Positions 11,582 through 55,119 of a stretch of 64,000 bases of DNA are shown here, piece by piece. Both the position numbers and the translations under genes were made by a program. The notes under the pieces were generated by a model that saw only the letters and a list, made by a program, of their open reading frames with translations, was not told where the DNA came from and did no database searches. The DNA comes from Malacoraja senta (lineage: Eukaryota), in assembly GCA_038087875.1 (NCBI GenBank), contig CM075981.1, positions 1,550,001 to 1,614,000 of the forward strand. The letters are read 5' to 3'. Each line of letters begins with the position of its first letter. Positions within the stretch are counted from its first letter, which is position 1.

Positions 11582-11618
11582 ATGTGGATTCCCATTCTTC
11601 TCATCTCCTCGCTGCCGG
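11582..11618 (+). CDS. Gene B exon 1: signal-peptide leader MWIPILLISSLP(G)
   Basis: ATG at 11582, hydrophobic leader, G|GTGAGT phase-1 donor. Joins V1 to give MWIPILLISSLPGAVWA, a typical split CD300/pIgR-type leader. Confidence 0.88.
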
Positions 11619-12762: not shown

Positions 12763-13192
12763 AAACACGTGTCCGGCCCAGTGTCGGTTGAGAGATGAAT
12801 GTTGGCTGCGCAGCCGGCGGCACCGCCAATTAAATAGCAAAGTGGGGTCTTTCTTTAGGGTGAGAGGCCGGGCACCGCCTGGGATTGTTGGAAGGCAGCT
12901 CCTGCAACACTGCCGCGCTCCCTCAGAACCGCACTGCGATCCCAGCCCAGTTTCTGCTCAGGGATCTGGAGTGGGAAGTGAACCCAAATTGTACTGAGCC
13001 GCGGACAGAACATTGACACAACTGGTACAATAACAGCACTGTCTGCACTTCAGACCGGAGACATTGGTCGTGAAGCAATATGACACATTATGGAACGTTT
13101 TACGTTTTCTTTCATGTAATCTTCAAAATGTATCAATTACCATTAAACAGTTAATTTGCTCTCCATCTGAAAGTTTCTCCGCTCAGTTTCAG

Positions 13193-13507
13193 GTGCAGTG
13201 TGGGCAGAGTGGGAAGTAAAAGGAGTTGTGGGAAGAGAGATCACAATCGATTGTCACTATGCAGCAGAGTACCGCTCACACACAAAATACTGGTGCCGTG
13301 GGAGGAGTCGATCGTGTAGAGTTTTAGTGGAAACAAATGGGCAACACGGACGGAGTGGAAGAGTGTCAATCACAGATAACCCGGCACGAGGAATATTTAT
13401 TGTGACTGTGGAGGATCTTCACTCGGAAGATACAGGATGGTACAGCTGTGGAATTTCAACATCAGCCGACCATCCAATATTTAACGTTTTACTCGAAGTA
13501 TCTGACG
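13193..13507 (+). CDS. Gene B exon 2: Ig V domain V1 (CD300/pIgR-like)
   Basis: tttcAG|GT GCA GTG TGG start and GAC G|GTatgt end; 315 nt, phase 1-1. IDCHY...KYWC...C...RVSITD...TVEDL..EDTGWYSC includes the extra WC...C disulfide of the CD300/pIgR/TREM family. Confidence 0.92.
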
Positions 13508-15694: not shown

Positions 15695-16009
15695 CTGCAG
15701 TGTGGGGAGAGACGTATGTAAGAGGAGTTGTGGCAAGAGCGATCACAATCGATTGCCACTATGCAGCAGAGTACCGCTCACACACAAAATACTGGTGCCG
15801 TGTGCAGAGTCGCCAATGTACGGATGTGGTGGACACAAATGGGCAACAAGGACGGAGTGGAAGAGTGTCAATCACCGATAACCCGGCACGAGGAATATTT
15901 ACTTTGACTGTGGAGGATCTTCACTCTGGAGATACAGGATGGTACAGGTGTGGAATTACTACATCTAACGGCCGTCCAATGTTAAACGTAGAACTCCAAG
16001 TATCTGACG
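15695..16009 (+). CDS. Gene B exon 3: Ig V domain V2
   Basis: catttcAG|CT GCA GTG TGG start and GAC G|GTacgt end; 315 nt, phase 1-1, intact V motifs (ORF 15700..16029). Confidence 0.92.
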
Positions 16010-20062: not shown

Positions 20063-20377
20063 CTGCAGTATGGGGAGAGAGGAATGTAACAGGTGTTGTG
20101 GGAAGAGCGATCACAATCGATTGTCACTATGCAGCAGATTACCGCTCAAACACAAAATACTGGTGCCGTGGGTGGAGTCGCCAATGTACAGATATGGTGG
20201 AAACAAATGGGCAACACGGACGGAGTGGAAGAGTGTCAATCACAGATATATCGGCACTAAGAATATTTACTGTGACTGTGGAAGATCTTCACTCTGGAGA
20301 TACAGGATGGTACAGGTGTGGAATCACAGCATCCACCGAACATCCATTGTTTCCCGTATATCTCCAGGTATCTGACG
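20063..20377 (+). CDS. Gene B exon 4: Ig V domain V3
   Basis: catttcAG|CT GCA GTA TGG start and GAC G|GTacgt end; 315 nt, phase 1-1. NVT N-glycosylation sequon and intact V motifs. Confidence 0.92.
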
Positions 20378-22802: not shown

Positions 22803-23123
22803 AACCCTTGTCTGCTCCTGTGCTCAGGTATCTGTCAGCAGCAAATGCCTCACGTCTTGGAGGCTCAGTGTCAGTGTCCTGTGAGTCTCTCCGTGGATCC
22901 CTTCCCATCCATTACACATGGTTTGAGAAGAACGAGCATTGGGTTGCAATGATCTTGAAAGGCAATCAACTGGATCTGAGTTGTGAAATCCTCAGAGGTG
23001 AACACCTTCGATATTACTGCACAGCCTCAAATAATCGTGGGACAAAATCCAGTGAAATAGTCACGGTGAAAGTCTTCAAAGGAGCAGGAACGTGCAGTTA
23101 TGTGACAGAAATGAACAATGCAG
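22803..23123 (+). CDS. Gene B exon 5: Ig C2 domain C2-1 (Fc-receptor-like)
   Basis: cccacAG|AA CCC TTG start and GCA G|GTgagt end; 321 nt, phase 1-1. PVL...GGSVSVSCESLRGSLPIHYTWF...YYCTASN motif typical of FCRL-type C2 domains. Confidence 0.9.
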
Positions 23124-24376
23124 GTGAGTGTTCCTCTCGTGTCCCTGAACCTGCTGCTATTCGCCTTGCGGTAATGTTCATGTATTTCTTGTTATTTGCA
23201 GACGGCATCATTGCAGCCACCGTGAGCTCATGGTGTAAAATGCGAGAGTTTGTTTGGGGGGGACTGGCAAACAATTGCCCGTAGCTTCCACCATGGAGGT
23301 GTTGCGCAATTTCAGCAAAGGAGAGAAAGACATGCACTTGTCACAAAGGGTTGAGTGCACTCCATCAAATTTCTGCCTTCTGCCTTAAAAATGCCGCTTG
23401 GCTGCCGCTTAAGGTCTCACAGTCTCTTTGAGACATTGAAAGCAACCAAATGCATTCTGTTTGGATCCGCCATCATTTACAATCAAGGATGTACAATTTC
23501 ATGATCATGTTCATGATTTTAACTGTTAATTTGTGTTAAACTCCAGTAATATCACTAAATTAAATTGTAATCTACTTGGCCGTCACTCCATCAAGTATAA
23601 CCCTTACTTTTGTCAAAGAGAATTTTGAAATGAACTCCCAGTAGGCGTGGAGACGTTCAGATTGGAAGTCCAGAATAGAGTGTGAATGGTTTACATCAGA
23701 GACACCAAGCTTATACAATGCCAGCGTTTCTTAAACTATTTCAGTGCCATTCACCCTTGAGTCTTTATTACAAGATTTAATTCACCCTCCACTAAATATT
23801 CTTATGTTTTTTTTGGTTATTATCATCTTATTTTCACTTGTGCATAATTTTATATATAATTTATTTTGTCACATGAGCAAAACACATGAATTAACTCATT
23901 CACCCCAAAATAATTTCATTCACCCTTGGGTAAACCATTTATCAGTTTAAGAAGCACTGGCCGAGGCTACAATTTCGCCGAACACTTGTGTTTGGTCTGT
24001 CATGACCCAGAGTCGTACTTGATAGACACCCGGTTGATGCAGAGCAGCAGCAGTTTGCACCATCTGCACGATGCACTGCAGCAACTCACCAAGACTCCCA
24101 AGACATTACCTTCCAATTGCAACAGGCTCCGTGTTCAACGCATCATTCTTCACCATTCACACCCACATTAGCTGGGAAGCGCTTTGGAACGACGTGCAGA
24201 AGGTGAGGGACGGTGTACAGTATCTGTCTCTCATCGCAATCTAGGTGGAATTCAACAGAGTTAAGAAAATCATTGGGCGGACGCCCCTGTATACATTGAT
24301 GTATACTATAATGTATATGTTTGTGAAAGGCTAATTTTGCTCTTCAATCTATGAAAGAATTTTCCTTCAGTTTCAG

Positions 24377-24688
24377 GTGCACTGTGGGCAGAGAGCGAAG
24401 TACGAGGGGTTGTGGGAAGCGCGATCTCAATCGATTGTCACTATGCAGCAGTGTACCGCTCACACACAAAATACTGGTGCCCTGGGACAAGTCGCCAGTG
24501 TAAACATATCGTGGAAACAAATGGGAAACAAGGACAGAGCGGAAGAGTGTCAATCACAGATAACCCGGCACGAGGAATATTTACTGTGACTGTGGAGGAT
24601 CTTCACTCTGGAGATACAGGATGGTACAGATGTGGAATTATTGCACCTGGCGAACCAACATTTAAAGTACATCTCCAAGTATCTGAAG
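24377..24688 (+). CDS. Gene B exon 6: Ig V domain V4
   Basis: tttcAG|GT GCA CTG TGG start and GAA G|GTaggt end; 312 nt, phase 1-1, intact V motifs. Confidence 0.92.
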
Positions 24689-25855: not shown

Positions 25856-26176
25856 ACCCCGTGTCTGTTCCTGTGCTTGGCTTTCTGTCACCAGCCAATG
25901 TCTCCTGTCTCGGGGGCTCAGTGACAGTGTCCTGTGAGTCGGTCAGTGGATCCCTTCCCATTAGCTACACATGGTATGAAAAGACCCCATCTGTGGATTC
26001 AAAGATCTCAGACCAAAATGCCCTGGATCTGCATTGTCAATCATTCAAACACCAGCACCATCAATATTATTGCACAGCCTCCAATAATAATGGAACAAAA
26101 TCCAGTGAAATGGTCAATGTGTCCATCTCCAGCAGTGACGTGCCCTGCAGTTTTCTAGTGAAAATCAACGGCACTG
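25856..26176 (+). CDS. Gene B exon 7: Ig C2 domain C2-2
   Basis: cccacAG|AC CCC GTG start and ACT G|GTaagt end; 321 nt, phase 1-1. GGSVTVSCESVSGSLPISYTWY...YYCTASN. Confidence 0.9.
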
Positions 26177-27159: not shown

Positions 27160-27208
27160 GTCATGAATATTCTTGTGAAAATTCGATAACATCCAATTAC
27201 TCTGCAAG
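27160..27208 (+). CDS. Gene B exon 8: 49-nt linker exon (G)HEYSCENSITSNYSA
   Basis: ttccttgttccaacAG acceptor and AG|GTaaac donor; phase 1 to 2. Paralogue at 50254-50302 has the same length and phase. Confidence 0.8.
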
Positions 27209-29503: not shown

Positions 29504-29589
29504 TTACATCTCATGGAATGTGGGGCGCTGGTTGTTCTTTCTCCTGCTTGTGCTCTGGAGTATCTCAACCGCGGTGTTCACAAGAGGCT
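29504..29589 (+). CDS. Gene B exon 9: transmembrane exon with an NxxR arginine, (S)YISWNVGRWLFFLLLVLWSISTAVFTRG
   Basis: ctcttgccctttgcccAG acceptor in phase 2, matching the linker exon. Hydrophobic helix. Donor T|GTAAGG at 29590 (phase 1), with an alternative AAG|GTAGGT at 29595. Confidence 0.75.
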
Positions 29590-30692
29590 GTAAGGTAGGT
29601 TTTATTATCATCATGTTCATAAATTATAGGAGCAGAATTGGTCCATTCAGCCCATTATATATAATCCGCCCCCAATCACGACTATTCTAGCCTTCGCTCC
29701 CGATCCATCCTCCTGCCTTCACCCTATAACCCTTGACATCCTTATTTATGAGGAATATGAAAATCTCCGGCTTAAAAATATCAATTGATTTGGATAGGTA
29801 CAAAAATACTGGAGTAACTCAGCGGGACAGGCAGTATCTCCGGAGTGGATTGATATGGCCTCCACAGCCTCCTATGGTAATGAAATCCATTGATTCACCA
29901 CCCTCTGCCCAAAACAATCCATTCTCTTCGCCGAATGTATCCAAACGGTTTCCATTAATGCTTTCAAATATCCTGTCCATTGATATAAACAAAAGTCGTG
30001 CACGTTTTCATAACCTGAAGTTAAACCAAATCACTATGTAGATGATATCATGTGGTTTTGTCAGGTTGTACGTGTGCTGGGTGGATTTCTGTGCGCGGTG
30101 TGGATTCGTTGGGGTCCATCTTCCAGACAGCCATGTGTTGGGGGTGGTCGGGTCAAATAAAGCGTGGTTCCCACTGTCAGTGAGTCTGATGACTTCACAT
30201 TGTCTTTTGCAGAGACGCGATGAATCAGAACCTCGCCACTCGACACACGAATTAGAATGAAGACTCCTAGCTTGCACCAACAGTGAGGGAATTCTGCACC
30301 GCGATGAAATATTTATGCATCATCCTGCTTTGTCAACTGATACCAATTGGACGAATATATGTATCTTGCAATTCAACGAACGGTTTCATGAAAGTGACTT
30401 CAAAGCAATGTTCCAAACTTTCCAAACCATATCTGTTTCCAAAACTCATTTACCGCACTGGTCTTAATGTTTGTCACCTCTTCCAAGGTTTCTTTCATCA
30501 CCTTCGAACTATTGTTTTAACCTCTGCGTGGTTTCTGCTGCTCAAAAGTCTTATACCCTGTTAAAATATATTATATGCATTCAACTTCCTGGAAAAAAAT
30601 GTTTTCGCTGACAAATGAATAATTATGCATCAGGATGCTTCTTAATAAATTTTTGTTGTCAATAAATGGTTTGTCTAATTTGTTTTGTTTAG

Positions 30693-30763
30693 ACTGTAAA
30701 TTTAGTGTTGAAGAACAGACTGAAATCAGATTGCTGGAGATTTCTCCTGTTGCCAAACGTTAA
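30693..30763 (+). CDS. Gene B exon 10: short cytoplasmic tail (Y)CKFSVEEQTEIRLLEISPVAKR*, no ITIM or ITAM
   Basis: ttgttttgtttAG acceptor at 30691-30692. Phase 1 fits the 29590 donor. Frame and stop are conserved in the relic at 8633-8703. The summed exons give 2142 nt, or 713 aa plus stop. Confidence 0.6.
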
Positions 30764-34623: not shown

Positions 34624-34660
34624 ATGTGGATTCCCATTCTTCTCATCTCCTCGCTGCCGG
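34624..34660 (+). CDS. Gene C exon 1: leader MWIPILLISSLP(G)
   Basis: Identical to 11582-11618, with a G|GTGAGT donor. Confidence 0.88.
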
Positions 34661-36191
34661 GTGAGTGAAAGCCAGATCCTGATATTCCAATGATCAATGT
34701 TATTTGGCGTCCCATGCACCCTTTTCACAGCAGAGATAGTTAAGTATGTGTAGACATGTAATGGGGGAGGTGCAACTCAGTGCATTGTGGTGATGGATCT
34801 GAAATCACATTTGAATATCTAGACTATGTTCGTAGTTTAATCACTGTTGGCACTTGGTCTAATAGCATCCTGATGATAGTTTATAGGCATAAAATAGCAA
34901 ATGAATTTGGAGCAGATACTCCAAGATACCTGGACCGGACATAGGTTGCAGCATCACCAGGAAGTTAATTCTACACTTTTGAAATGTGTTTACAACTTAG
35001 GGGGGAGTCGGGATTGTGGACTCATTGTGTCAGTTCAAATATTCCCTGCATTTGTCCAACTCAACTCTGTCGCAAACCCAACAATCCCCCGGAGTCTGAG
35101 ACTGAACCACTGTCCTCGCCCTATCCACCTACCCCCAACTCTCTCTCCATCCTCTTTCCAATCCGCAACCAAGTCGCGCTGAAATGCAAGTTCAGTTTAT
35201 TGTCACGTGTACCGAGGTACAGTGAAAAGCTTTTTCTTGCGTGCTAACCAGCCAGATACATGATTATAATCGATCCTCTTACAGTGCATAGATACATGAA
35301 AGGGAAATAAAGTTTAGTGTAAGGTAAAGCCAGCGAAGTCCGATCAAGGGTAGTCCGAGGGTCTCCAAAGAGGTAGATAGTTCAGCACTGCTCTCTGGTT
35401 GTGGTAGGATGATTCCGATGTCTGAGTACAACTGCGAAGGAACTGTCCCCGAATCTGGCGGTGTGCGTTTTCACGCTAATAACGCTCTCCGATAATGTAC
35501 CCGCTTTATTGTAGTTCGTCCGTCCTCTGTGTCCTCAGTCAGGGCTTTGTAAAGGCAGTGAATGTCTAAACACGGGTCCGCCTTTCCGCGGCCGGGTGGG
35601 ACTACAGGGGTACCAGGCGCTGTTCGCGGGCACCTGGGGGATTTCCGGGACATCTGGGCACCGCCTCGGGTTGAATACATCCTTGACAAGTATTGTAACA
35701 TAGTTGTATAGTTGTTTATTTCGTTTATTTGTTTCTCTTGTATTATGGTGGTGGGTTCTGTTTTGTTTTATTGTATCGTAAGTATTATTTTCAATAATTA
35801 AATTAATTATTTGATAATATTTTTAAAAAAACACGGGTCCGGCCCAGTGTCGGTTGAGAGATGAATGTTGGCAGCGCAGCCGGCGGCACCGCCAATTAAA
35901 TAGCAAAGTGGGTGCTATTTAATTAAATAGCCTGTGATTGTTGGAAGGCAGCTCCTGCAACACTGCCGCGCTCCCTCAGAACCGCACTGCGATCCCAGCC
36001 CAGTTTCTGCTCAGGGATCTGGAGTGGGAAGTGAACCCAAATTGTACTGACCCGCGGACAGAACATTGACACAACTGGTACAATAACAGCACTGTCTGCA
36101 CTTCAGACCGGAGACATTGGTCGTGAAGCAATATGACACATTATGGAACGTTTTACGTTTTCTTTCATGTAATCTTCAAAATGTATCAATT

Positions 36192-36901
36192 CTGGGTAAA
36201 TATTTTTAGTATAATATCTAAAGTGACCAGCACACAAGTGGACCCGGATCCAAAATTTATAATACTCGGAACATCAGAATTAAATCAAACATTTACAACA
36301 ACACAAAGAAACTTTATTGATTATAGTATAATAACAGGAAAAAATTTAATTCTAAAATTTTGGAAAGGCCCTACGGCCCCCACAATCAAAATGTGGATTA
36401 TAGAAATGACGGTGACCTTAAACGTGGAAAGAATCAGATTTTCCCTGTTGGACAAACAGGAATTATTCGTTGGAACATGGTCTCCCTTTATTGATTATTT
36501 AAAGGGTCAGAATGGTTCAGCACGGGAACCTGACTAATGCTCGGGCTAAAGAATGGATGAAATGTTATACTCTGAAATGTACGAATATATCTCGAATTAA
36601 GTTTTTTATTTTAATAATTTTTTCCATTCTTCTTTAACTATCTTTCTCTTTTTTTTTTTTTTTTTTGTTTTGTTTTTTGTTTTTTTTGTTTGTTTTTTTC
36701 TCTTTTTCTTCTCTCTCTTTTCTTTCTTTACTTCATCTATCTTTTTAGTTCTATCTAGTTAAAAAAAAAAAAAAAAAAGACAAAAGGTATTGGAGACAAT
36801 GTAATAATAATGGATAATATTATCAATTCAAAAATGTAAGCCTGTAATGATGTTAATAGGTTATGTACTTATCTCCAATAAAAAATATTTTCCAAAAAAA
36901 A
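36192..36901 (+). mobile_element. Young 5'-truncated L1-type insertion specific to gene C intron 1
   Basis: 15-bp TSD CAAAATGTATCAATT (36177-36191 and 36902-36916), single-copy in gene B. ORF 36133..36537 ends ...PTIKMWIIEM...ERIRF...F.GTWSPFIDYL (L1 ORF2 C-terminus). AATAAA and an A-rich tail. Confidence 0.85.
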
Positions 36902-36970
36902 CAAAATGTATCAATTACCATTAAACAGTTAATTTGCTCTCCATCTGAAAGTTTCTCCGCTCAGTTTCAG

Positions 36971-37285
36971 GTGCAGTGTGGGCAAAGTGGGAAGTAAAAG
37001 GAGTTGTGGGAAGAGAGATCACAATCGATTGTCACTATGCAGCAGAGTACCGCTCACACACAAAATACTGGTGCCGTGGGAGGAGTCGACCGTGTAGAGT
37101 TTTAGTGGAAACAAATGGGCAACACGGACGGAGTGGAAGAGTGTCAATCACAGATAACCCGGCACGAGGAATATTTACTGTGACTGTGGAGGATCTTCAC
37201 TCTGAAGATACAGGATGGTACAGCTGTGGAATTACAACATCAGCCGACCATCCAATATTTAACGTTTTACTCGAAGTATCTGACG
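36971..37285 (+). CDS. Gene C exon 2: Ig V domain V1
   Basis: Canonical AG/GT, 315 nt, phase 1-1; 4 aa differences from B V1. Confidence 0.92.
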
Positions 37286-38515
37286 GTATGTTTCGCAGTG
37301 AATGACTTGACGTCTCCAGCAGAAAGACAATACAGGATTCCAATCGACCCTCTTACAGTGCATAGATACATGAAAAGGAAATTACGTTTAGTGTAAGGCG
37401 AATCCAGCAAAGTCCGATCAAGGGTAGTCCGAGGGTCATCAAAGAGATAGATAGTTCCGCACTACTCTCTGGATGTGGTAGGATGATTCAGATGCCTGAC
37501 AAGAGCTGTGAAGAAATTGTCCCCGAATCTGGCGGTGTGCGTGTTTACGCTAGTAACGCTCTCTGGTAAGGGACCTGGAGGTGGGTGGTGAGTGGGCGAG
37601 TGGTGAGTGGGTGAGTGGTTGGGTGAGTTGGGCAGATGCATGGCAGATGAAGTTTAATGTGGATAAATGTGAGTTTATCCACTTTAGTAGCAAAATCAGG
37701 AAGGCAGATTATTATCTGAATGTTGTCAGGTTGGGAAAAGGGGAAGTACAAAGAGATCTGGGGGTCATTGTTCATCACTCACTGAAAGTAAGCATGCAGG
37801 TACAGCAGGCAGTGAAGAAAGCTAGTGGCATGTTGACCGTAATAACAAGAGGAGTTGAGTACAGGAGCAAAGAGGTCCTTCTGCAGTTGTACATGGCCCC
37901 AGTGAGACCACACCTGGATTATTGTTTGCAGTTTTGATCTCCAAATTTGAGGAAGGACCTTCTTGCTATCGAGGGAGTGCAGTGTATGTTGAGGGAGTGC
38001 AACAAGGTTAATTCCCGGGATGGCGGGACTGTCATGTGTTGATTGAATGGTGCGGCTGCGCTTGTATACTCTGGAATTTAGAAGGATGAGATGGGATCTT
38101 ATTGAAAAATATAAGATTATTAAGGGATTGGACACGCGAGAGGCAGGAAACATTGTCCCGATATTAAGAATAATGGATAGGCCATTTAGAACGGAGATGA
38201 GGAAAAACTTTTTCACGCAGAGAGTTGTGAATCTGTGGAATTATCTGCCTCAGAAGGCAGTGGAGGCCGATTCACTGGATGCATTCAAAAGAGAGTTAGA
38301 TAGAGCGCTTTGGGCTAGCGGAATCAAGGGGTATGGGGAAAGGCAGGAACGGGTTACTGATTCTGGATGATCAGCCATGAACACATTGAATGGCGGTGCA
38401 ATATGACACATCATGGAACGATTTAAGTTTTCTTGCATGTTTTCTTCAAAATGTATCTATTTCCATTAAAAAGTTCATTTGTTCTCCATCTGAAAGTTTC
38501 TCCCCTCCATTTCAG

Positions 38516-38830
38516 CTGCAGTGTGGGGAGAGACGTATGTAAGAGGAGTTGTGGGAAGAGCGATCACAATCTATTGTCAATATGAAGCAGAGTATCGCTC
38601 ACACACAAAATACTGGTGCCGTGTGCAGAATCGCCAATGTACAGATATGGTGGAAACAAATGGGCAACACGGACGGAGTGGAAGAATGTCAATCACAGAT
38701 AACTCGGCACGAGGAATATTTACTTTGACTGTGGAGGATCTTCACTCTGGAGATACAGGATGGTACAGGTGTGGAATTACAACATCTAACGGCCGTTCAA
38801 TGTTAAACGTAGAACTCCAAGTATCTGACG
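38516..38830 (+). CDS. Gene C exon 3: Ig V domain V2
   Basis: Canonical AG/GT, 315 nt, phase 1-1; 11 aa differences from B V2. Confidence 0.92.
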
Positions 38831-39029
38831 GTACGTTTCTCAGCGATTGACTTGTCGTCTCCACTGAAAAGCCTGATCTATGTTTTCTCCGGGAAGGGTC
38901 AGGGCAGCACCGATATCCCGAGGCTCCGCAGCAGTGCAGAGCCATGCGGGGAGCGGGCGCGGGTCGGGAAACCGCACTCATTTTGCTCTCACCCTGAGCG
39001 GGCTCTGCCCCACTGAGCCGCCACCCACT

Positions 39030-40465
39030 TAGAAACATAGAAACATAGAAAATAGGTGCAGGAGGAGGCCATTCGGCCCTTCGAGCCAGCACCACCATTC
39101 ATTGCGATCATGGCTGATCGTCCCCAATCAATAACCTGTGCCTGCCTTCTCCCCATATCCCTTGATTCCACTAGACCCTGGAGCTCTATCTGACTCTCTC
39201 TTAAATCCATCCAGTGATTTGGCCTCCACTGCCCTCTGTGGCAGGGAATGCACAAATTCACAACACTCTGGGTGAAAACGTTTTTTCTCACCTCAGTCTT
39301 AAATGGCCTCCCCTTTATTCTAAGACTGTGGCCCCTGGATCTGGACTCGCCCAACATTGGGAACATTTTTCCTGCATCTAGCTTGTCCAGTCCTTTTATA
39401 ATGTTATGTGTTTCTATAAGATCCCCCCTCATCCTTCTAAACTCCAGCGAATACAAGCCTAGTCTTTTCAATCTTTCCTCATAAGACAGTCCCGCCATCC
39501 CAGGGATCAATCTCGTGAACCTATGCTGCACTGCCTCAATCACAAGGATGTCCTTCCACAAATTAGGAGACCAAAACTGTACGCAATACTCCAGATGTGG
39601 TCTTTCCAGAGCCCTATACAACTGCAGAAGAACCTCTGTACTCCTATACTGAAATTCTCTTGTTATGAAGGCCAACATTCCATTAGCTTTCTTCACTGCC
39701 TGCTGTACCTGCAAGCCAACTTTCAGTGACCGGTGTACAAGGACACCCAGGTCTCGCTGCGCCTCCCCCTTACCTAACCTAACCCCGTTGTGATAATAAT
39801 CTGCCCCCTTGTTTTTGCCACCAAAGTGGATAACCTCACATTTATCTATATTATACTGCCACGCATCTGCCCACTCACTCAACCTGTCCTGGTCATCCTG
39901 CAACCTGCTAACATCCTCTTCATAGTTCACACTGCCATCCAGCTTTGTGTCATCCGCAAACTTGCTAGTGTTGCTCCTAATTCCCTCTTCCAAATCATTA
40001 ATATATATGGTAAACAGTTGCGGCCCCAACACCGAGCCTTGCGGCACTCCATTCGCCACTGCCTGCCATTCTGAAAAGAACCCGTTCACTCCTACTCTTT
40101 ACTTCCTGTCTGCCAACCAATCTTCTATCCACGTCAACACCCTACCCCCAATACCATGCGCTCTAATTGTAGTCACCAGTCTCCCGGGCGGGTCTTTATC
40201 AAAGGCTTTCTGAAAGTCTAGATCCACTACATGCACTGGCTCCCCTTCATCCATTTTACTTGTCACATCCTCAAAATAATCCAGAAGATTAGTCAAGCAT
40301 GATTTTCCTTTCATAAATCCATGCTGACTTGGACTAATACTTTTACTGCTATCCAAATGCCCCATTATTACCTCTTTAATAATTGACACCAGCATCTTTC
40401 CCACCACCGAAGTCAGGCTAACTGGTCTGTAATTCCCCGTTTTCTCTCTCGCTCCTTTTTTGAAA
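39030..40465 (-). mobile_element. CR1 LINE fragment, paralogue of 16210-17635
   Basis: ORF 38989..40089 (366 aa, RT domain YADD-equivalent KFADDTKL) and ORF 40099..40407 (SQHGFMKGKSCLTNLL..FEDVT). Confidence 0.92.
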
Positions 40466-42832
40466 AGTGGAATTTAACTTCTCTTTCACTTCACTTTTCA
40501 CTTCAAGTGGAATGCTCAGCACATTTCCCTTCCTCTGAACTGTATGAAATGTCACCCTGTCAGAAGTTTGCATTCCGACTCAAAATAATAATCCGACAGA
40601 TCAGTGAGAAACAAGTGTTGCTCGCGGTCTGAATACCCCGAGAGTTTTTAAAAAATCAGTCCCCAGAGCTCAATAGACTGCGATCAGTCCTCCCGGGGTA
40701 GGCCATCCCGCTTCCCGCCCCCACCTCAGGGACCAGTCATTCCCTCCCAAACCCCGCGCTCTCTCTCTCTCCCTCTGCCCGTCAATGCGCCCCCATCCCC
40801 AGCAGCCACTGTCCACCCACCGCCCGGCAGTCAGCCAACCTCTCCACCCGGACATTTCCCCGGTGTTAAGCAGAATAAACTCATCTTTCACCCCATCAGC
40901 CGTCGCACACAACACATAATCCTCCAACATTTTCGCCACCTGCAACGGGATCCCACTACTAGACACATCTTTCCATCTCCACCGCTTTCTGCTTTCCGAA
41001 GAGACCGTTCCTTCCGTAACTCCCTGGTCAACGTCCACCCTCCCCCCCCCCCAAAAAAAAACATCCCCTCCCCAAGTACCTTCCCCGACAACTGCAGGAG
41101 ATAGATCACATGTCTCGATACCTCCTTCCTCTACTCCGTCCAAGGTCTCCAACAATCTTTGCGGGTGAGGATTGACTAGCATCTCCTCGAAGCTCACCTA
41201 CTACATCCGCTGTTCCAGGTGTGAACTACTATATATCGGCTAGACCAAGCGCAGACTCGTCGATCGTTTCGCTGACTAACTCCGCTCAGTCTGCTCCTGG
41301 ACCTCCTCCACTATCCAACGTAAATAGGAGGAAAAGCACCTGGGCAACTTACAACCCATCGTTTGAATATTGACTTCTCTAACTTCAAGGAACCCTTGCT
41401 TTACTCCTGTCCCCATCCCGCCACCATCCTGGCTCTCCAGTTAGTTGCACAGTCAAACTGATTTTCTTTTACTTATTGTATGCCTCGTTGTCACCTTCCC
41501 TTCAGCTCACAATGATCCATTGTCCATTTTCTTTTCACCTTTGATCACTTGTTTTCACACCTTACCTTTCCATTTTCTTCTGTCTCCCTGTCCCATGATT
41601 CTCAGGCTGAAGATGGGTCTCGACACGAAACGTCACTCATTCCTTCTTTCGAGAGATGCTGCCTGCTCCGTTGCGTTACTCCAGAATTTTGTGTCTATCT
41701 TAAAGGGATCGTAAATTCGTTTTCCACAGCAGAGATGGTTAACTGTGTGTAGACATGTAATGGGGGAAATGGAACTCGGTGCATTGTGGTGATGGATCTG
41801 AAATCACACTTGAATATCTACACAATGTTCGTAGTTTAACCACTGTTGACACATGGTCGAATTGCATCCTGATGATAAATGAAAGGCTTAAAATAGCGAA
41901 TGAATTTGAAGCAGATACTGCAAGACACCTGGACCGAAGGCGAGAGGTTCCAACGTCATCAGGAAGTTAATTCTACACTTTTAAAATGTGTTTACCAAGG
42001 AGGTGGAAGTCGGGATTGTGGACTCATTGTGGCAGTTCAAACATTCCCAGCATTTGTCCGGCTCAACTCTGTCGCAAACCCAACAATTCCCCGGTGTCTG
42101 AGACAGAATCACTGTCCTCGCTCTATCCACCCACCCCAACTCTTTCTCCATCATCTCTCCAATCCGCGGCCCAGTCGTGCTGAATTGTCCAGGGCGAGCC
42201 GGGGTCATCGGGAATAAAACCTGTCCCAGATGAGCAGCGGGACATTGGGCTCACAATTCAGTTTAGTTTATTGTCACGAGTACCGAGGTACAGTGAATCT
42301 GGCGGTGTGTGTTTTCACGCTAGTAGCGCTCTCCAGCAAGGGACCCGCTTTATTGTAACCCGTCCGTATTCTGTCCTCAGTCAGGGCGTTGTAAACACAG
42401 TGGCTGCGGTGAATTTCTAAACACGGGTCCGGCCCAGTGTCGGTTGAGAGATGAATGCTGGCAGCGCCGACACTGAAATAGCAAAGTGAGGTATTTCTGT
42501 AGGGTGAGAGGCCGGGCACCGCCTGGGATTGTTGAAAGGCAGCTCCTGCAACACTGCCGCGCTCCCTCAGTACCGCACTGCGATCCCAGCCCAGTTTCTG
42601 CGCAGGGATCTGGAGTGGGAAGTGAACCCTAATTGTACTGACCCGGGGACAGAACACAGACACAACTTGTACAATAACAGCACTGCCTGCACTTCAGACC
42701 CGAGACATTGGCCGTGAAGCAAAATGACACATCATGGAACGATTATGTTTTTCATGTAATCTTCAAAATGTATATATTTCCATTAAACAGTTCATTTGCT
42801 CTGCATCTGAAAGTTTTTCCCCTCCCTTTCAG

Positions 42833-43147
42833 CTGCAGTGTGGGGAGAGAGGAACTTAACAGGAGTTGTGGGAAGAGCCATCACAATCGATTGTCACTAT
42901 GCAGCAGAGTACCGCTCACAGGCTAAATACTGGTGCCGTGGGCAGAGTCGCCAATGTACAGATATGGTGGAAACAAATGGGCAACACGGACGGAGTGGAA
43001 GGGTGTCAATCACCGATATACCGGCACTAAGAATATTTACTATGACTGTGGAAGATCTTCAATCTGGAGATACCGGATGGTACAGCTGTGGAATCACAGC
43101 ACCTGCCGACCATTCAATGTTTAACGTATATCTCCAAGTATCTGACG
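42833..43147 (+). CDS. Gene C exon 4: Ig V domain V3
   Basis: Canonical AG/GT, 315 nt, phase 1-1; about 15 aa differences from B V3. Confidence 0.92.
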
Positions 43148-45563
43148 GTACGATTCGCAGCGATTGACTTAATGTCTCCACTGAAAAGCCTGATCCATGT
43201 TTTCTCCGGGAAGGGTCAGGGCAGCACCGATATCTCGAGGCTCCGCAGCAGTGCAGAGGCCTGCGGGGAGCGGGCGAGGGTCGGGAAACCCCACTCATGT
43301 TTGCTCTCACCCAGTGCGGGTTCTGTGCCATTGAGCGGCCACCCACTTCAAGACACTCAACACATTTCCCTGCCTCTGAATTGTATGAAATATCACCCTG
43401 TCAGAGGTTTGCATTCCGACTCAAACTAATGATCCGACAGATCAGTGAGAAACAAGTGTTGCTCGCCGTCTGAATACCCGGAGAATCATAAACAGGGAAT
43501 CAGTCCCCAGAGCTCCACAGACTGCGTTCAGTCCTCCCGGGGCAGGCCAGTCCGCTTCCCGCCCCCACCTTAGGAATCAGTCACCCCCTCCCCACCCCGT
43601 GCACTCTCTCTCTCTCCCTCTGCCCAGTAAATGCGCCCCCACTGCCAGCAGCCATTGTCCACCCACCGCCCGGCAGCCAGCCAGCCTCTCCTCCCGGACA
43701 TTTCCCCGTTCGTAAGCAGAATAAACTCATCTTTCGCCCCATCAGCCGTCGCACACAGCATATATTCCTCCGACATTTGCGCCACCTACAACGGGATGCC
43801 ACAACTAGTCACATCTTTCCATCTCCTTCGCTTTTTGCGTTCCCTCCGCAACTCCCTGGTCAACACGTCCTCCCCCCCCCTCCCCTCGTCCCCAGGTACC
43901 TTCCCCTACAACTGCAGGAGATGCAACACCAGTCACTATATATCCCCCCCTTTACTCCGTCCATGGGCCTCAACAGTCTTTTGGGGTGAGGCAGAGGGTC
44001 GCTTGCATCTCCTCTAACCTCATCTACTCTATCCGCTGTTCCAGATGTGAACAAGCGGATATAGTAGATGGGAGACCAAGCGCAGACTCGGCGATCGTTT
44101 CGCTGAACAACTCCGCTCAGTCTGCCTCGGCCTACGCTACATCCCGATTGCTAAACACTTTTATTCCCCCTCCCATTCCCAAACTGATCTTTCCGTCCTG
44201 GACCTCCTCCAGTGTCAGAGTGAGGCCAAAGGCAAATTGGAAAAACAGCGCCTCATATTTCGCTTGGGCAGCTTACAACCCAGCGGTTTGAATATTGACA
44301 TCTCTAACTTCAAGTAACCCTTGCTTTACTCCTTTCCATCCCGCCCCCATCCGAAACCTCCAATTAGATTCACCTGATAATATTTTACTGATTGTATGCC
44401 TCGTTGTCCCCTTCCCTTCAGCTGACAATGATTCAATCTACATTTCCCTTTAACATTGTCACCTTTGATCACTTGTTTTAACATCTTATCCTTCCATTTC
44501 TCTTCTGTCACCCAGAACATGACTGTCAGGCTGGAGAAGGGTCTCGATCCGAAACTTCACCCACTCCTTCTCTCGAGAGATGCTGCCGGCTCCGCTGAGT
44601 TCCCCCAGCATTTTGTGTCTCTCTTAAAGCGATCGTAATTAGTTTTCGCGATTAAATTACAAGGCATTGAATTGTGTTTTTGGCACGCTGGTCTTCATCA
44701 GTGAGAACATTCAGAATATAATTTGAGATAATATGCTTCAGACGTGCAGATGTTCAGTCCACACTTTGGGAATTGTGTTCAGCTTCAGTCACTCAGCTCC
44801 AAGAAAAGTTGAGATGGACAGCGTGCAGAAAGGTTTTTGGGCGACGTTGCCTGGACAGGATGGGATTGACGCAGGGAGCGATTGGACAAACTCAGACTTC
44901 ATTCCTTAGTGTGGAAATGATTGAGAGAGGAACTTATAGAAATGAATAAATCACGAGAAGCATGTTCATTTTCCCACGATGTGTGGAATCAAAAAGTGGA
45001 GGACAGAGGTAATGGGAACTATTTAAAGAGGGAGGAATAGTAAGGTGCCATTGACCGTAATGGCATGTTTTGTACAGATGAGTGGCCGAAGCTGAACACA
45101 ATTCGCACAAGTTCGACCTCAACAACATATGTACAACTGAAACATAACATCCCAACATATGTTCTGAGGGACAACATTTTCCACACATTGGGTAATATGT
45201 ACATGGAACCTGCTGCCAGGGGAAGTTGTTGAGGCAGTTAGAATAGCAGCATTTAAAATAAATTTTGGATATTTGCGTAGATTGGGATCATTGCGAGTGA
45301 TAAATGAGAAACGCGGACATATGGAAATGTCATAGAAAGACATGTTGGTCGGCATTAATGAGCTGTTGTGATGGGCATCTTTCGGTTCTCAATAACTCTA
45401 ACCTTCTTCGGTTTCTGCGCTTCGCACACTCCCAGAGATGTAGATGAGCCGGTGAGGTATCAACCGGACGGTTCGGGCTGAGATAAAGTGCTGCTGAGAT
45501 TTAGCAAGTGTTTGGTTTTTAACAATTCATACAGGTGACTGAATATTTGCTCCATTCCCACAG

Positions 45564-45884
45564 AACCCATGTCTGCTCCTGTGCTCAGTTATCTGTCAGC
45601 AGCAAATGCCTCACGTCTTGGAGGCTCAGTGTCAGTGTCCTGTGAGTCTCTCCGTGGATCCCTTCCCATCCATTACACATGGTTTGAGAAGAACGAGCAT
45701 TGCGTTTCAACGATCTTGCAAGGCAATCAACTGGATCTGAGTTGTGAAATCCTCAGAGGTGAACACCTTCGATATTACTGCACAGCCGCAAATAATCGTG
45801 GGACAAAATCCAGTGAAATAGTCAAGGTGAAAGTCTTCAAAGGAGCAGGAACGTGCAGTTATGTGACAGAAATGAACAATGCAG
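45564..45884 (+). CDS. Gene C exon 5: Ig C2 domain C2-1
   Basis: Canonical AG/GT, 321 nt, phase 1-1; has an extra Cys (EHCV vs EHWV in B). Confidence 0.9.
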
Positions 45885-47135
45885 GTGAGTGTTCCTCTCG
45901 TGTCCCTGAACCTGCTGCTATTCACCTTGTGGTGATGTTCATGTATTTCTTGTTATTTGCAGACGGCATCATTGCAGCCACCGTGAGCTCATGGTGTAAA
46001 ATGCGAGAGTTTGTTTGGGAGACTGGCAAATAATTGCCCGTAGCTTCCACCATGGAGGTGTTGAGCAATTTCAGCAAAGGAGAGAAAGACATGCACTTGT
46101 CACAAAGCGTTGAGTGCACTCCATCAAATGTCTGCCTTCTGCCTTAAAAATGCCGCTTGGCTGCCGCTTAAGGTCTCACAGTCACTTTGAGACATTGAAA
46201 GCAACCAAATGCATTCTGTTTGGATCCGCCATCATTTACAATCAAGGATGTACAATGTCATGATCATGTTCATGATTTTAACTGTTAATTTGTGTTAAAC
46301 TCCAGTAATATCACTAAATTAAATTGTAATCTACTTGGCCGTCACTCCATCAAGTATAACCCTTACTTTTGTCAAAGAGAATTTTGAAATGAACTCCCAG
46401 TAGGTGTGGAAACGTTCAGATTGGAAGTCCAGAATAGAGTGTGAATGGTTTACATCAGAGAGACCAAGCTTATACAATGCCAGCGTTTCTTAAACTATTT
46501 CAGTGCCATTCACCCTTGAGTCTTTATTACAATATTTAATTCACCCTCCACCAAATATTCTTATGTTTTTTTTGGTTATTATCATCTTATTTTCACTTGT
46601 GCATAATTTTATATATAATGTATTTTGTCACATGAGCAAAACACATGAATTAACTCATTCACCCCAAAATAATTTCATTCACCCTTGGGTAAACCATTCA
46701 TCAGTTTAAGAAGCACTGGCCGAGGTTACAATTTCGCCGAACACTTGTGTTTGTTCTGTCATGACCCAGAGTCGTACTTGATAGACACCCGGTTGATGCA
46801 GAGCAGCAGCAGTTTGCACCATCTGCACGATGCACTGCAGCAACTCACCAAGACTCCCAAGACATTACCTTCCAATTGCAACAGGCTCCGTGTTCAATGC
46901 ATCATTATTCACCATTCACACCCACATTGGCTGGGAAGCGCTTTGGAACGACGTGCAGATGGTGAGGGACGGTGTACAGTATCTGTCTCTCATCGCAATC
47001 TAGGTGGAATTCAACAGAGTTAAGAAAATCACTGGGCGGACGCCCCTGTATACATTGATGTATACTATAATGTATATGTTTGTGAAAGGCTAATGTTGCT
47101 CTTCAATCTATGAAAGAATTTTCCTTCAGTTTCAG

Positions 47136-47447
47136 GTGCACTGTGGGCAGAGAGCGAAGTACGAGGGGTTGTGGGAAGAGCGATCTCAATCGATTGTCAC
47201 TATGCAGCAGTGTACCGCTCACACACAAAATACTGGTGCCCTGGGACAAGTCGCCAGTGTACACATATAGTGGAAACAAATGGGAAACAAGGACAGAGCG
47301 GTAGAGTGACAATCACAGATAACCCGGCACGAGGAATATTTACTGTGACTGTGGAGGATCTTCACTCTGGAGATACAGGATGGTACAGATGTGGAATTAT
47401 TACACCTGGCGAACCAACATTTAAAGTACATCTCCAAGTATCTGAAG
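47136..47447 (+). CDS. Gene C exon 6: Ig V domain V4
   Basis: Canonical AG/GT, 312 nt, phase 1-1. Confidence 0.92.
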
Positions 47448-48641
47448 GTAGGTTTCTCAGTGAGTGACTTCATGTCTCGACTTTGGCATCTGCATAAAAC
47501 ATTTGTTGGGTCACATATGGGAGTCTGGTGCACAGTTCTGGTCGCCGCTTTATAAAACAAAAGATGTGAAAGGTTTGGAGAGGTTACAGAAAAATGTCAC
47601 CGGGATATTTAGTTGTAGGTTACAAATGCAACATGGAAATGGATCCTTCGGCCCACCGAGTCCACACCGACTAGCGATCACCGGTCACACTGGTTCTATG
47701 TTATTCCACTTTCCCATTCGCTCCCTACACACAATTCTACAATACCGCCATTCTCACACCTCATTAGTGCAACATTATCACTATCAACAATTTTATACAA
47801 GGAAATTAAAAAGTTGTTGATAATGATACTGTTGCACTAACGAAGTGTTTAAATGTTGGTATTGTAGAATTGTGGCAGAGTTTCAGATTAAAAGAAGATT
47901 AACTGCAGATGCTGGAAATATAAAACAAAGATAGATGGTGCTGCTGTGTATTGGTACAGTGGCAGACATGGTAGTTCTGGCAGCTGGGAGGATGGAGAGA
48001 CACAGAGATGTTCAAATCTGATAAATTGTGAGGAGAAGGAGCAGAGAAAACTTACAAGAATGTTGTGATGGCTTGAGGGCCTGACATACAGGGAGGGATT
48101 GAGCAGATTATGACTTTATTTCTTGGTGCGCAGGAGGATGAGGGATGATCTCATGGCAGGTAAAAAATCATGCGAGGAATAGATCGAGTTAATACACAGA
48201 GTCTTTTGCTCAGAGTAGGGGAATCGAGAACCGGAGGACATGGTTTTAATATGAGGGGGGAATGATTTAACAGGAACCTGGGAAAACGTTTTTATACAAA
48301 GGTTGGTAGGCACATGAAACGAACTGCCGACAGAAGTAGTTATGGCAGGTACTATCGTAACATTTAATAAAATATTGGACAGGTACATGAATATGATATG
48401 TTTAGTGGGTTAAGGGCCAAGAAAGGGCAGGTGGAACTCGTGTAGATTGGGCGCGTTGGTCAGTGCAGGCAAGTTAGACCGAAGGGCCTGTTTCTATGCT
48501 GTATGACTATGATTCTATGTAGATGGATGGGTCAGATTCCAACCTGGCGGCTCTGGCTAAGGTACAGAGATGGTGGATATTGGCGAGTGGTTGATTTTCA
48601 GATGTTCACCCAGTGTCTGACAGTTTGCTCCTTACCCACAG

Positions 48642-48962
48642 AACTCGTGTCTGTTCCTGTGCTTGGATTCCTGTCACCAGTCAATGACTCCTGTCTCGGG
48701 GGCTCAGTGACAGTGTCCTGTGAGGCGGTCAGTGGATCACCGCCCATTAGCTACAGTTGGTATGAAAAGACCCTATCTGTGGATTCAAAGATCTCAGACC
48801 AAAATGCCTTGGATCTACATTGTCAATCCTTCAAACACCAGCACCATCAATATTACTGCACTGCCTCCAATATTAATGGAACAAAATCCAGTGAAATGGT
48901 CAACGTGTCCATCTCCAGCAGTGACGTGCCCTGTAGTTTTCTAGTGAAAATCAACGGCACTG
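48642..48962 (+). CDS. Gene C exon 7: Ig C2 domain C2-2
   Basis: cccacAG|AA CTC GTG start and ACT G|GTaagt end; 321 nt, phase 1-1. Confidence 0.9.
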
Positions 48963-50253
48963 GTAAGTAGTGGAGGGAATGAGGAGAAGAAGGGGAAGTG
49001 GGGTGGGGCGGTTTATATGATCACAAGTGATAGAAGCAGAAATAGACCATTCAATCATGGCTGATCTATCTTCACCTCTTCATCCCATTCTCCTGTCTTT
49101 TCCACATAATCCCCGACACCCTGAAATCCATGCACGTTATTTAATGAACATCAATATTAAAATGATAGACTTATGGCCCATTTGTCAATACTTGGTTGCT
49201 GGGCTCCAGGAATAGATTCCCCAGTGCTGGTGTAGGGCAGATTCCTGGCTAGAACCTCGTCTTATGTTTACACAGTTTTTAAACTAGGTTTGCAGTTACA
49301 TCATTCCAAGCACTTTCACTTTCCTGCCATAATCTCCGCATGACCGACACTCAAAAATGGGAAGGGAACAGAAATTATCCGTAAATGTGGCCGCAGTTAA
49401 CTCCTAGACTATATCAGCTTTGGTCCACTGTGTTAATGTTGACCATTCAGCACCATCGATACTAATCCCATTTACCATCCCCTCACCCACACTCTTCTCA
49501 GACTTGACAATTCATGTGTCTTCACCATCTAGGTTTAAAAATATTCCTTGCTCAGATACCCTCCAAATATTCTACTCCTTAACCCAACCCTATGTTCTCC
49601 ACTTCTACACACATCTGCTGTGCTGATTTCCCACAAAGTACCCTATCTATGTTCCTCATAGCTTTACACACCTGTAATAGGTTCCCCCTTCTTTTCCTGT
49701 GTGGATTAAAATCTCCGACTATCCAGCCTCTCCTTCTAACTGTAATGTTTCATCCCAGGCACTACCCCTCGCATGAAATCACCTCCTTTATTTTAATTTA
49801 GAAATCCAGCGTGGAAGCAGCTGCCTTTCACCTGTGCACTAATTCTATCCTACTCACTAGGGACAATTTACAGAAGGCAATTAATCTAAAAACCTGCACG
49901 TCTTTAGAATATGGGAGAAAACCGCAGCACTTGAATAAAACCCACGCGGTCACATGGAGAACATAAACACTCCGTGCAGACAGTACCCGTAGTCAGGATT
50001 GAACTCGGGTCTCCTGCGCTATAAGGCAGCAACTCAACTGGTGGGCCACTGTGCCGCCCTAATGTAGGCAACCTGAGTTGGAACCAGCACTACAGCTTAT
50101 CACGATAACATCTCCCATTTGCTGCAAATTACACTGAAGAAACATTGCCCTGTCAATTAAACCTATAAACTCCTTATATCGGACAAACATGCTCTCTTGT
50201 TCAACTGCAAGTGAAAAGCAGTGAAACTGATTTTTATTTCCTTGTTCCAACAG

Positions 50254-50302
50254 GACTTGAATATTCTTGTGAAACTTCGAAAAGAACCAATTATTCTTCA
50301 AG
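50254..50302 (+). CDS. Gene C exon 8: linker exon (G)LEYSCETSKRTNYSS
   Basis: ttccttgttccaacAG acceptor and AG|GTaaac donor; 49 nt, phase 1 to 2. Confidence 0.8.
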
Positions 50303-50599
50303 GTAAACTACTCTGTTTCCAATGAAAGGTGCCATGTACTAATTGCTGGTGTTTTGATTGGGATTGCTTCAATTTGGAGAAAGTTGTGCCTTCCGTTTAC
50401 TGGCATTAAAGGCCCTTGGGAGTATTGATCTGAATGCACAGTGACACAGCCAGTGGAACCACAGCCTCACAATGCCAAGAACCTGAACTTAGACGCCGTC
50501 TATGTGTGTTCTGCAAATTTCGCCTTTCATTGTGTTGGAAGGTACTGCAGATGCTGGATTAAACTGAATATAGGCACAAAAAATTGAGTATCTCGGCGG

Positions 50600-51570
50600 G
50601 TCAGACAGGACCTTTGGAGAAAAGGCATAGGTGACGTTTCGGGTTGAGTCCCTTCTTCAGAGTGAAAGGCAGGGGAAAGGGAAACGAGAGTGATATCGAC
50701 GGTGATATAGAAAGGTATAAAACATTGAATGAAAGATATGCGACAAAAGTAACGATGATGAATGAAACGATCCATTGTTAGCTGTGGGCTCGGTGAAAAC
50801 GAGTTGTACGGACAATGAGACACTACAAGATAGTGAAATTCGTACAATGACTAGGGTGGGGGAGGGACGGGGAGAGAGGGGATGCAAGGGTTATTTGAAG
50901 TTATAGAAATCAATATTAATATCGCTTGGCTGTAAGATGCCCAAGCGAAATATATGGCACTGTTCCTCCAATTTCCATTTGGCCTCACTCTGGCAATGGA
51001 GAAAGCACAGAATAGAACGGTCAGTGTGGGAATGGGAGGGGGAGTTAAAGTGTTTAGCAACTGGAAGATCATATAGTCCCAGGCGGATTGAGCGTATGTG
51101 TTCAATGAAACGATTGTCCAGTCAACGTTTGGTCTTGCTGATGTATAAGAGTCCACACCTGATACAATAGATGAGGTTCGAGGCGGTTCAAATGAACTCT
51201 GCCGAACCTCAAATGACTGTTGAGTTCCTTGGACAGAGTCGAGGGGGGGAGTTATAGGGACAGATGTTGCAATTCCTGCAGTTGAACGGGAAGGAATCTG
51301 GGGAGAGGTTTGTTTGGATGGGAAAGGATGAGATAACCAGGGAGGTATAGGTCATAAGGTCATAAGGGATAGGAGTAGAATTGGGCATTCAACAGGATTG
51401 CACAGGGAATGGTTTCCTGCACTCCACCTGGCACTCAAATGCACTTGGACCATCTCCCAAACCTCCCTCCGCTTTCTCGATCACACAATCTCCATCACAG
51501 GAGATAGACTATCGATGGATGTCTATTATAAACTGACTGACTCCCACAACTATCTAGATCACACTTCTTC
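50600..51570 (-). mobile_element. Penelope-like element fragment, minus strand
   Basis: The reverse complement resembles the GIY-YIG fragments above and an RT-end motif (SLRFLDHTISITGDRLSMDVYYKLTDSHNYLD in ORF 51398..51664). Terminal hairpin arm at about 50600-50660. Confidence 0.75.
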
Positions 51571-55110: not shown

Positions 55111-55119
55111 TAAATTAAC

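Follow-up and report, generated by a model that had tools for sequence, protein, structure and literature searches.

Introduction

Paired activating and inhibitory immunoglobulin (Ig) receptors with charged transmembrane (TM) segments are textbook knowledge, and the principle is not new. One described activating segment is the NxxR TM, the FcR-gamma-coupling segment of LILRA2, PIR-A, NKp46, GPVI, OSCAR, and FcalphaR, which is also used by FCRL, SLAM, and leukocyte receptor complex (LRC) genes of Xenopus, with FcR-gamma association for two Xenopus receptors (PMC2413239 and PMC4536121). Here we describe gene B, a receptor gene in a stretch of 64,000 nucleotides (nt) from the skate Malacoraja senta (GenBank assembly GCA_038087875.1, contig CM075981.1, positions 1,550,001 to 1,614,000 of the forward strand; herein the window, with positions numbered from its first letter). 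Its 3′ end, at positions 29504 to 30763, encodes a TM segment with an Arg at its outer end, followed by a short cytoplasmic tail. Judging from the sequence, we consider that this conserved Arg would recruit an Asp-bearing adaptor with an activation motif of the immunoreceptor tyrosine-based type (ITAM) and that gene B would thus encode an adaptor-coupled activating receptor; we put the probability of this reading at roughly 0.55.

Gene B resembles several groups of described receptors in part. The NxxR receptors (LILRA, PIR-A, NKp46, GPVI, OSCAR, FcalphaRI, and TARM1, together with the FCRL, SLAM, and LRC proteins of Xenopus with “TM1”) likewise have a short tail, and their TM carries an Arg at its N-terminal end. 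Their TM, like the cassette of gene B, has been shuffled onto many ectodomain types, relatives bearing an immunoreceptor tyrosine-based inhibitory motif (ITIM) are paired with them, and the Arg of gene B lies at a depth comparable to that of the Asp in FcR-gamma. The subtype differs in its Asn, its DYT motif, and its acidic C-terminal end, where the family of gene B has W-x-x-x-R-W-x-x-F and a basic C-terminal end. Mammalian activating CD300 proteins (badger CD300H-like, P0131; cotton rat CMRF35-like molecule 7, P0070) share with gene B a V domain with an extra Cys pair and a short tail, but their V domain is single and the charge in the middle of their TM is a Lys or Glu (...LLIFLKVPLF..., ...LLVFLELPLL...), whereas gene B has six Ig domains and an outer-end Arg. 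pIgR and the teleost pIgR-like genes contain tandem V domains of gene B’s type, and NCBI names relatives of gene B “polymeric immunoglobulin receptor-like”; pIgR, however, has V domains only, an uncharged TM, and a long tail with sorting signals, and gene B departs from it in two interspersed FCRL-type C2 domains, a charged TM, a tail of ~22 residues without sorting signals, and its place in a paired cluster. FCRL proteins, here represented by human FCRL5, are homologous to the two C2 domains of gene B (C2a and C2b) only and are without the CD300/pIgR-type V domains that make up four of its six Ig domains; “Fc receptor-like protein 5” is the name given to some relatives.

Gene Structure and Reading Frame

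Gene B was modeled by mapping skate proteins onto the window and then refining the splice sites. The model has 10 exons and a 711-residue open reading frame (ORF) without internal stop, with AG/GT at every internal exon (Table 1). The predicted product is a type I receptor, of which the stretch at 29504 to 30763 is the 3′ end, with the TM exon, the last coding exon, and the 3′ untranslated region (UTR). The TM exon is 91 nt long and ends at 29594, not 29595, between the acceptor ttgcccag/TTACATC and the donor TGTAAG/gtaggt. In the frame chosen by a first-pass annotation of the locus, which had read the TM start as W-N-V-G-R-WLFFLLLVLW, it encodes YISWNVGRWLFFLLLVLWSISTAVFTRGCK, and that start is borne out. 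The same is true of the short tail that the annotation had described as free of ITIM and ITAM. A 618-nt intron separates the TM exon from the tail exon, which adds 15 residues (RRDESEPRHSTHELE) to a cytoplasmic part of ~22 residues in all; it contains no Tyr, and therefore neither motif. The Arg-TM exon occurs once in the window, where no second copy of it was found. Its identity to the Amblyraja radiata ortholog (94.5%) exceeds that of the 300-nt intron flanks on each side (~82%), which argues that it is not a chance ORF. The ORFs listed for the remainder of 29504 to 30763 were rejected as spurious, the region being 3′UTR up to 30763.

The frame of the TM segment hinges on a 49-nt stalk exon. 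Every Ig exon of gene B has phase 1-1 (V4, for example, closes with TCT GAA G/gtagg); because they end in phase 1, the stalk exon is needed to bring the TM exon into frame. A direct V4-to-TM or C2b-to-TM splice was considered and rejected, as the exon at 29504 would then be translated as VTSHGMWGAGCSFSCL..., and this is no TM. The stalk exon lies between a strong polypyrimidine acceptor and the donor CAAG/gtaaac, is identical to its A. radiata counterpart at 48 of 49 nt, and has a 49-nt equivalent in the neighboring gene C (50254 to 50302), ahead of a TM exon that also starts in phase 2. Models from Rhinoraja longicauda contain it; XP_078277019.1 has a matching stalk-TM-tail arrangement (...SYIAWTVGRWLLF...KRRDKSEPGHSAHELQ), the protein ending ...GLEYSCETLKRSNYSSSYIAWTVGRWLLFLLLLIWSISIAFFTRASKRRDKSEPGHSAHELQ. 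This model (P0025) also fuses a TRIM69-like E3 ligase to the last V-C2-stalk-TM-tail part of the receptor; the fusion is probably a prediction artifact and the name given by the source misleading.

Two NCBI models, XP_032898097.1 (A. radiata) and XP_055511094.1 (Leucoraja erinacea), omit the stalk exon, splice the TM exon straight onto an Ig exon, and finish out of frame (...VTSHGKWGAGC...). In the A. radiata locus itself (CM021389.1, numbered here as L001) the ortholog is intact, with a stalk exon at 23331 to 23379, a TM exon at 24534 to 24624 (SYISWEVGRWMFF...), and a tail. A second TM copy lies 13 kb downstream (L001 37738 to 37828), with an extra mid-helix Arg and without the basic stop-transfer. 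XP_032898097.1 reads the TM out of frame because it skips the stalk exon, and it extends to this second copy (L001:37739); its reach to so distant an exon looks like a prediction error.

Comparison of the ectodomain with structures in the PDB divides its exons into two kinds. Over several domains the V exons match pIgR (E 2.4e-48); the best single-domain matches are CLM-1/CD300f (6e-19) and CMRF35 (5.5e-18), with NKp44 and TREM2 ranking behind them. All four V exons carry the WC-x6-C extra Cys pair (the Cx6-7C of CD300). C2a and C2b match six domains of human FCRL5 (PDB: 9loc, E 1.4e-42; best domain, 36.8 bits), with which they have the motifs PVSxPVL, GSLPI.Y, and YYCTA.N in common. The C2 exons also match Pfam Ig_C17orf99, Ig_2, and Ig_3, of which Ig_C17orf99 is the Ig domain of the human C17orf99 product. 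Because the V exons match pIgR/CD300 and the C2 exons match FCRL5, the predicted ectodomain is a V-V-V-C2-V-C2 mosaic in which the four V domains are of the CD300/pIgR type and the two C2 domains of the FCRL5 type. The CD300-like ectodomain of the first-pass annotation holds for the type of the V domains and not for the whole, which has six Ig domains, two of them FCRL5-type, rather than a single V.

An ITIM-Bearing Gene with a Near-Identical Ectodomain

It is the neighbor of gene B that argues most strongly for an activating role of the latter. The window is a tandem array of receptor genes, and gene C, downstream of gene B, couples a near-identical ectodomain to an unrelated, uncharged TM and a tail with ITIM-like motifs (Table 1). 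The end of a third gene, with the same ITIM exon, lies upstream at 495 to 774. An activating-type receptor end had been proposed for gene B on the basis of an Arg at the outer TM end and a short, motif-free tail; both features stand, and the ITIM-bearing neighbor adds to them. As predicted from their exons, genes B and C are an activating/inhibitory pair with the standard anatomy of paired receptors.

Conservation of the Arginine Cassette

TM segments were surveyed in the 150 best representatives of a HMMER search with V4, in two extra matches, and in the A. radiata locus. The resulting alignment (A2) holds 19 segments, gene B’s included; the set was partly picked by motif, and a hydropathy scan free of that bias supplied two members. 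Its sources are skates (Rhinoraja, Amblyraja, and Leucoraja), an electric ray (Narcine), stingrays (Hemitrygon and Hypanus), Mobula, sharks (Scyliorhinus and Hemiscyllium), and a sturgeon (Acipenser). When the TM regions of P0025 and P0006 were used to search for homologues, three close stingray/manta relatives were obtained besides the query itself, and nothing further.

Four positions are invariant in all 19 segments, namely W-4, R0, W+1, and F+4, with Lys never in place of Arg; the consensus is SY.IW.VGRWLLF.LL.I.TISV..FTR..K. In 12 of 17 segments the Arg is followed by 18 uncharged residues before another charge appears, so that the signature can be written as W-x-x-x-R-W-x-x-F, then ~18 uncharged residues, then R/K. 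Position -3 is by comparison free (K in five segments, N and E in three each, S, A, and D in two each, T and G in one each). Asn stands there in gene B, Mobula P0152, and Amblyraja P0061, Glu in the A. radiata ortholog (L001:24535-24624) and its second copy, and Thr in Rhinoraja. The cassette is found on V-only (P0069, P0114, P0083, and P0113), C2-only (P0152), and mixed (P0061, P0057, and P0012) ectodomains. W-x-x-x-R-W-x-x-F is, as far as the alignment allows it to be read, an old TM cassette that has been joined to V-only, C2-only, and mixed ectodomains in sharks, rays, skates, and a sturgeon. The tail is conserved as well, a motif [KR]R.[DN][EKQ]S[ED]P.H being kept between skates and stingrays. 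Other charged TM starts (W/A-V-L-R-H/K-T-G..., N-V-L-G-K-T-T...) were seen in the pIgR-like proteins P0035 (Conger conger), P0091 (Albula goreensis), and P0145 (Amia ocellicauda). These TM starts of basal ray-finned fishes are possibly related to the Arg cassette and hint at its diversification among bony fishes.

Membrane Position of the Arginine and Choice of Adaptor

After the Arg, the hydrophobic run is uninterrupted for 17 to 18 residues. Because the run is no longer than this, every TM window of 19 to 23 residues includes the Arg, and the best-scoring windows (Kyte-Doolittle and Wimley-White) place it at position 3 to 9. An AlphaFold2 prediction on A2 gives one helix, over residues 5 to 49 of the 61-residue Rhinoraja segment, with a predicted local distance difference test score of ~94 over residues 21 to 40, a block whose first residue is three positions ahead of the Arg; the Arg lies inside this helix, although the prediction gives a helix and not a membrane depth. 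The hydropathy windows agree with the first-pass placement of the Arg insofar as every best window contains it; its two flanking Trp residues fit an interfacial location as well.

Depth can be compared between the Arg and its putative partner. In FcR-gamma of mouse, chicken, and Xenopus, 15 residues separate the TM Asp from the first charged residue, and the skate Arg stands 18 residues from the equivalent boundary, roughly a turn closer to the outside; in human NxxR receptors the Arg is 16 to 17 residues from the cytoplasmic end. This geometry appears compatible with an FcR-gamma or zeta-type partner and is not diagnostic of one. The FcR-gamma proteins of Xenopus have 111 residues and two ITAM-like stretches. 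Among the best 150 candidates of a search with human FcR-gamma (the chimpanzee match was 100% over 77%), the sources were mammals, birds, and frogs.

We propose that gene B would be the activating-type member of a tandem pair and would carry an ancient Arg cassette where its TM helix begins on the outer side. Within the membrane the Arg would pair with an Asp in the TM of an ITAM-bearing, dimeric adaptor, and that adaptor would supply the signal that a 22-residue tail cannot give. By depth an FcR-gamma or zeta-type chain would fit best, and DAP12 would also be possible; FcR-gamma would be a plausible partner of gene B.

Several observations weigh against adaptor coupling and against a functional pair; those on membrane position and on expression are taken up below with the alternatives that they favor. 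According to a 2014 survey (PMC4016189), cartilaginous fish lack FcR-gamma, a statement repeated in a 2026 review (PMC13337447); in the literature on adaptors or pIgR-like/FCRL genes in sharks, we found only statements of absence. All four codon differences between the TM exons of gene B and A. radiata are replacements (N/E, L/M, L/I, and C/S), and none is silent. Both inhibitory neighbors carry tail-exon lesions, so genes B and C may not function as a pair. In gene C the penultimate exon (58536 to 58585) is followed by GG, where the copy at 29 to 78 has a GT donor, and the inhibitory tail of gene C may be spliced abnormally in this assembly. In the upstream inhibitory gene, the last exon has a 7-nt insertion relative to gene C (546 to 560; ggaaaCAATAAAcaacaggg versus ggaaacaacaggg), which puts both ITIMs out of frame.

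Alternative Readings

The first-pass annotation had named the segment an FcR-gamma-style NxxR motif and seen in it an LRC docking mode on a CD300-type receptor. Taken literally, the TM would be a true homologous member of the LRC/FCRL NxxR type, docking specifically onto FcR-gamma with the Asn contributing, which we regard as unlikely. The hallmarks of NxxR TMs include a DYT motif before the TM and acidic residue(s) at its C-terminal end (PMC6557307), and gene B was judged by such published hallmarks; three of four sequence hallmarks fail. An Arg near the N-terminal TM end is present (Arg674, preceded by W-N-V-G and followed by 18 uncharged residues). The N-V-G-R string is also there in gene B itself, and Asn recurs in two relatives, but it occupies position -3 in only 3 of 19 segments and is replaced by E, T, K, S, A, D, or G elsewhere, including in the nearest ortholog; it is no family feature, and the survey of shark and skate relatives returned W-x-x-x-R-W-x-x-F as the conserved element instead. 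No DYT motif was found before the gene B TM, which reads ...NYSASYISWNVGR (SYIS) without D or T; a Tyr at -7 from the Arg, common in the A2 family, is the sole DYT residue to recur, and it would coincide with the DYT Tyr only if DYT is spaced as in human LILRA2 and FcalphaRI. Nor was an acidic C-terminal end found in gene B, where ...AVFTRGCKRR is basic and the first acidic residue comes only after the basic stretch. The residues that follow the Arg in gene B (WLFF...) appear unlike the Gly/Ala-rich segments of the LRC. The FCRL-type domains of gene B do favor kinship, as the Xenopus FCRL relatives pair an NxxR TM with FcR-gamma; by the same token, since Xenopus FCRL and SLAM relatives have such a TM and gene B is itself part FCRL-like, the contrast between an LRC mode and a CD300-type receptor is smaller than had been supposed. 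Because Asn is unconserved, DYT and the acidic end are absent, and the Arg alone is a family feature, we do not file the TM under the NxxR subtype. Its literal N-x-x-R is best read from the alignment as a lineage-specific substitution and gives no evidence of an LRC-type module. “FcR-gamma-style” is at best a functional analogy, under which the segment may work like an FcR-gamma docking TM, and the specific “NxxR” claim should be dropped.

Two further alternatives dispense with signaling through an adaptor. The Arg might be an interfacial, snorkeling residue of an aromatic belt (W...RW), and gene B a nonsignaling binding, decoy, or transport receptor. Trp residues are typically found at the membrane interface, and the Arg, at the extreme edge of the 17- to 18-residue hydrophobic run and between two Trp, could for that reason be interfacial rather than buried. 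In the A. radiata ortholog, a Glu stands three residues ahead of the Arg and could form a pair with it inside the helix; several relatives have an acidic residue (Glu or Asp) at -3, which could neutralize the Arg; the conserved tail motif, moreover, hints at a function of the tail itself. What makes this improbable in our view is that the Arg is strictly invariant across sharks, rays, and a sturgeon, that a run of 18 residues is short for a plasma-membrane span, and that an ITIM-bearing twin next door is a standard signature of adaptor-coupled receptors (PMC2413239). The other possibility, very unlikely but not at odds with a cluster that holds a decayed activating copy and damaged inhibitory tails, is that gene B is silent or that its stalk exon is skipped, leaving the TM exon out of frame and the product soluble. 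The two stalk-less NCBI models would fit it, and the sequencing runs gave no RNA support: those of unknown type hold intron as well as exon (0.90 to 0.94 of sampled words), and runs from another organism, which are probably RNA, hold only 5 to 10% of these words. Against it stand the intact 711-residue ORF with canonical splice sites and the strong borders and near-complete conservation of the stalk exon, which the Rhinoraja models include, whereas the A. radiata model that lacks it has the marks of the prediction error described above.

Place of Gene B among Fc and Poly-Ig Receptors

The two papers that deny FcR-gamma to cartilaginous fish describe pIgR and FCRL as lacking there too, and the question is asked how Fc-dependent functions are managed (PMC4016189 and PMC13337447). 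Gene B joins a pIgR/CD300-type V to a clearly FCRL5-like C2 in animals so described, and its relatives are annotated in many sharks and rays and apparently unstudied. The W-x-x-x-R-W-x-x-F cassette differs both from the tetrapod NxxR and from the Lys/Glu segments of mammalian CD300, and it offers a handle on the ITAM adaptor of early jawed vertebrates. One could go further and propose that the gene B family, which combines pIgR/CD300-type V with FCRL-type C2 domains and has both activating and inhibitory members, is the Fc/poly-Ig receptor lineage said to be missing in cartilaginous fish. W-x-V-G-R-W would then be a module for docking FcR-gamma or zeta that was in place before cartilaginous and bony fishes diverged and that antedates the tetrapod NxxR module or gave rise to it; we hold this to be a doubtful extension.

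Features of the Receptor Cluster

Table 1. Exons of genes B and C and a related remnant in the window (identities are nucleotide identities between genes C and B)
Feature	Position	Strand	Details
Gene B, leader exon	11582..11618	+	MWIPILLISSLP; phase 1 end; ATG and GT donor; matches leaders of P0003/P0005
Gene B, V1 exon	13187..13507	+	CD300/pIgR-type V-set, phase 1-1; Pfam V-set 1.3e-13; AG/GT
Gene B, V2 exon	15695..16009	+	Pfam V-set 5.7e-13; AG/GT
Gene B, V3 exon	20063..20377	+	Pfam V-set 4.1e-11; AG/GT
Gene B, C2a exon	22803..23123	+	FCRL-type C2; Pfam Ig_C17orf99/Ig_2; tblastn to C2 of P0003/P0025
Gene B, V4 exon	24371..24688	+	Pfam V-set 7e-13; best single-domain PDB match CLM-1/CD300f 6e-19
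Gene B, C2b exon	25856..26176	+	FCRL5-type C2; PDB 9loc FCRL5 E 1.4e-42
Gene B, stalk exon	27160..27208	+	49 nt, GHEYSCENSITSNYSA; phase 1 in, phase 2 out
Gene B, TM exon	29504..29594	+	Encodes (S)YISWNVGRWLFFLLLVLWSISTAVFTRGCK; Arg at position 674 of 711
Gene B, last coding exon	30213..30260	+	RRDESEPRHSTHELE and TGA stop; tail kept in Rhinoraja, Hemitrygon, A. radiata
Gene B, 3′UTR	30261..30680	+	AATAAA at 30644 and 30661; ~90% identity to copy at 7927-8763
Gene C, inhibitory-type partner	34624..59277	+	Same leader, V1-V3, C2a, V4, C2b, and stalk exons as gene B
Gene C, leader exon	starts 34624	+	100% identity
Gene C, V1 exon	starts 36965	+	98.4% identity
Gene C, V2 exon	starts 38516	+	94.9% identity
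Gene C, V3 exon	starts 42833	+	91.1% identity
Gene C, C2a exon	starts 45564	+	97.5% identity
Gene C, V4 exon	starts 47130	+	98.1% identity
Gene C, C2b exon	starts 48642	+	93.5% identity
Gene C, stalk exon	starts 50254	+	83.7% identity
Gene C, TM exon	56319-56407	+	Uncharged, ITYIVASGVTVLLLILIIAFFWY; unrelated to the TM of gene B
Gene C, cytoplasmic (penultimate) exon	~58536-58583	+	ESKCNTSHGEDNNEIQ
Gene C, ITIM exon (last)	59002-59277	+	ITIM-like ITYAVV, VLYADV
Remnant of further activating-type copy	7209..8763	+	V4-like exon fused at ~7926 to intron preceding tail exon

The window contains no N runs and no tRNA genes. In the remnant upstream of gene B, the V4-like exon is cut 17 nt before its donor and a deletion has removed the C2b, stalk, and TM exons; what is kept, at ~90% identity, is the tail exon (RRDESEAGHSTHELQ) with the 3′UTR. 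A short interspersed repeat of ~80 to 300 nt occurs in both orientations in introns and intergenic DNA, for example at 27759 to 27846, at 31036 to 31123, and in more than 10 other places, and it is also present in the intron between the TM and tail exons of gene B (29605 to 29913).

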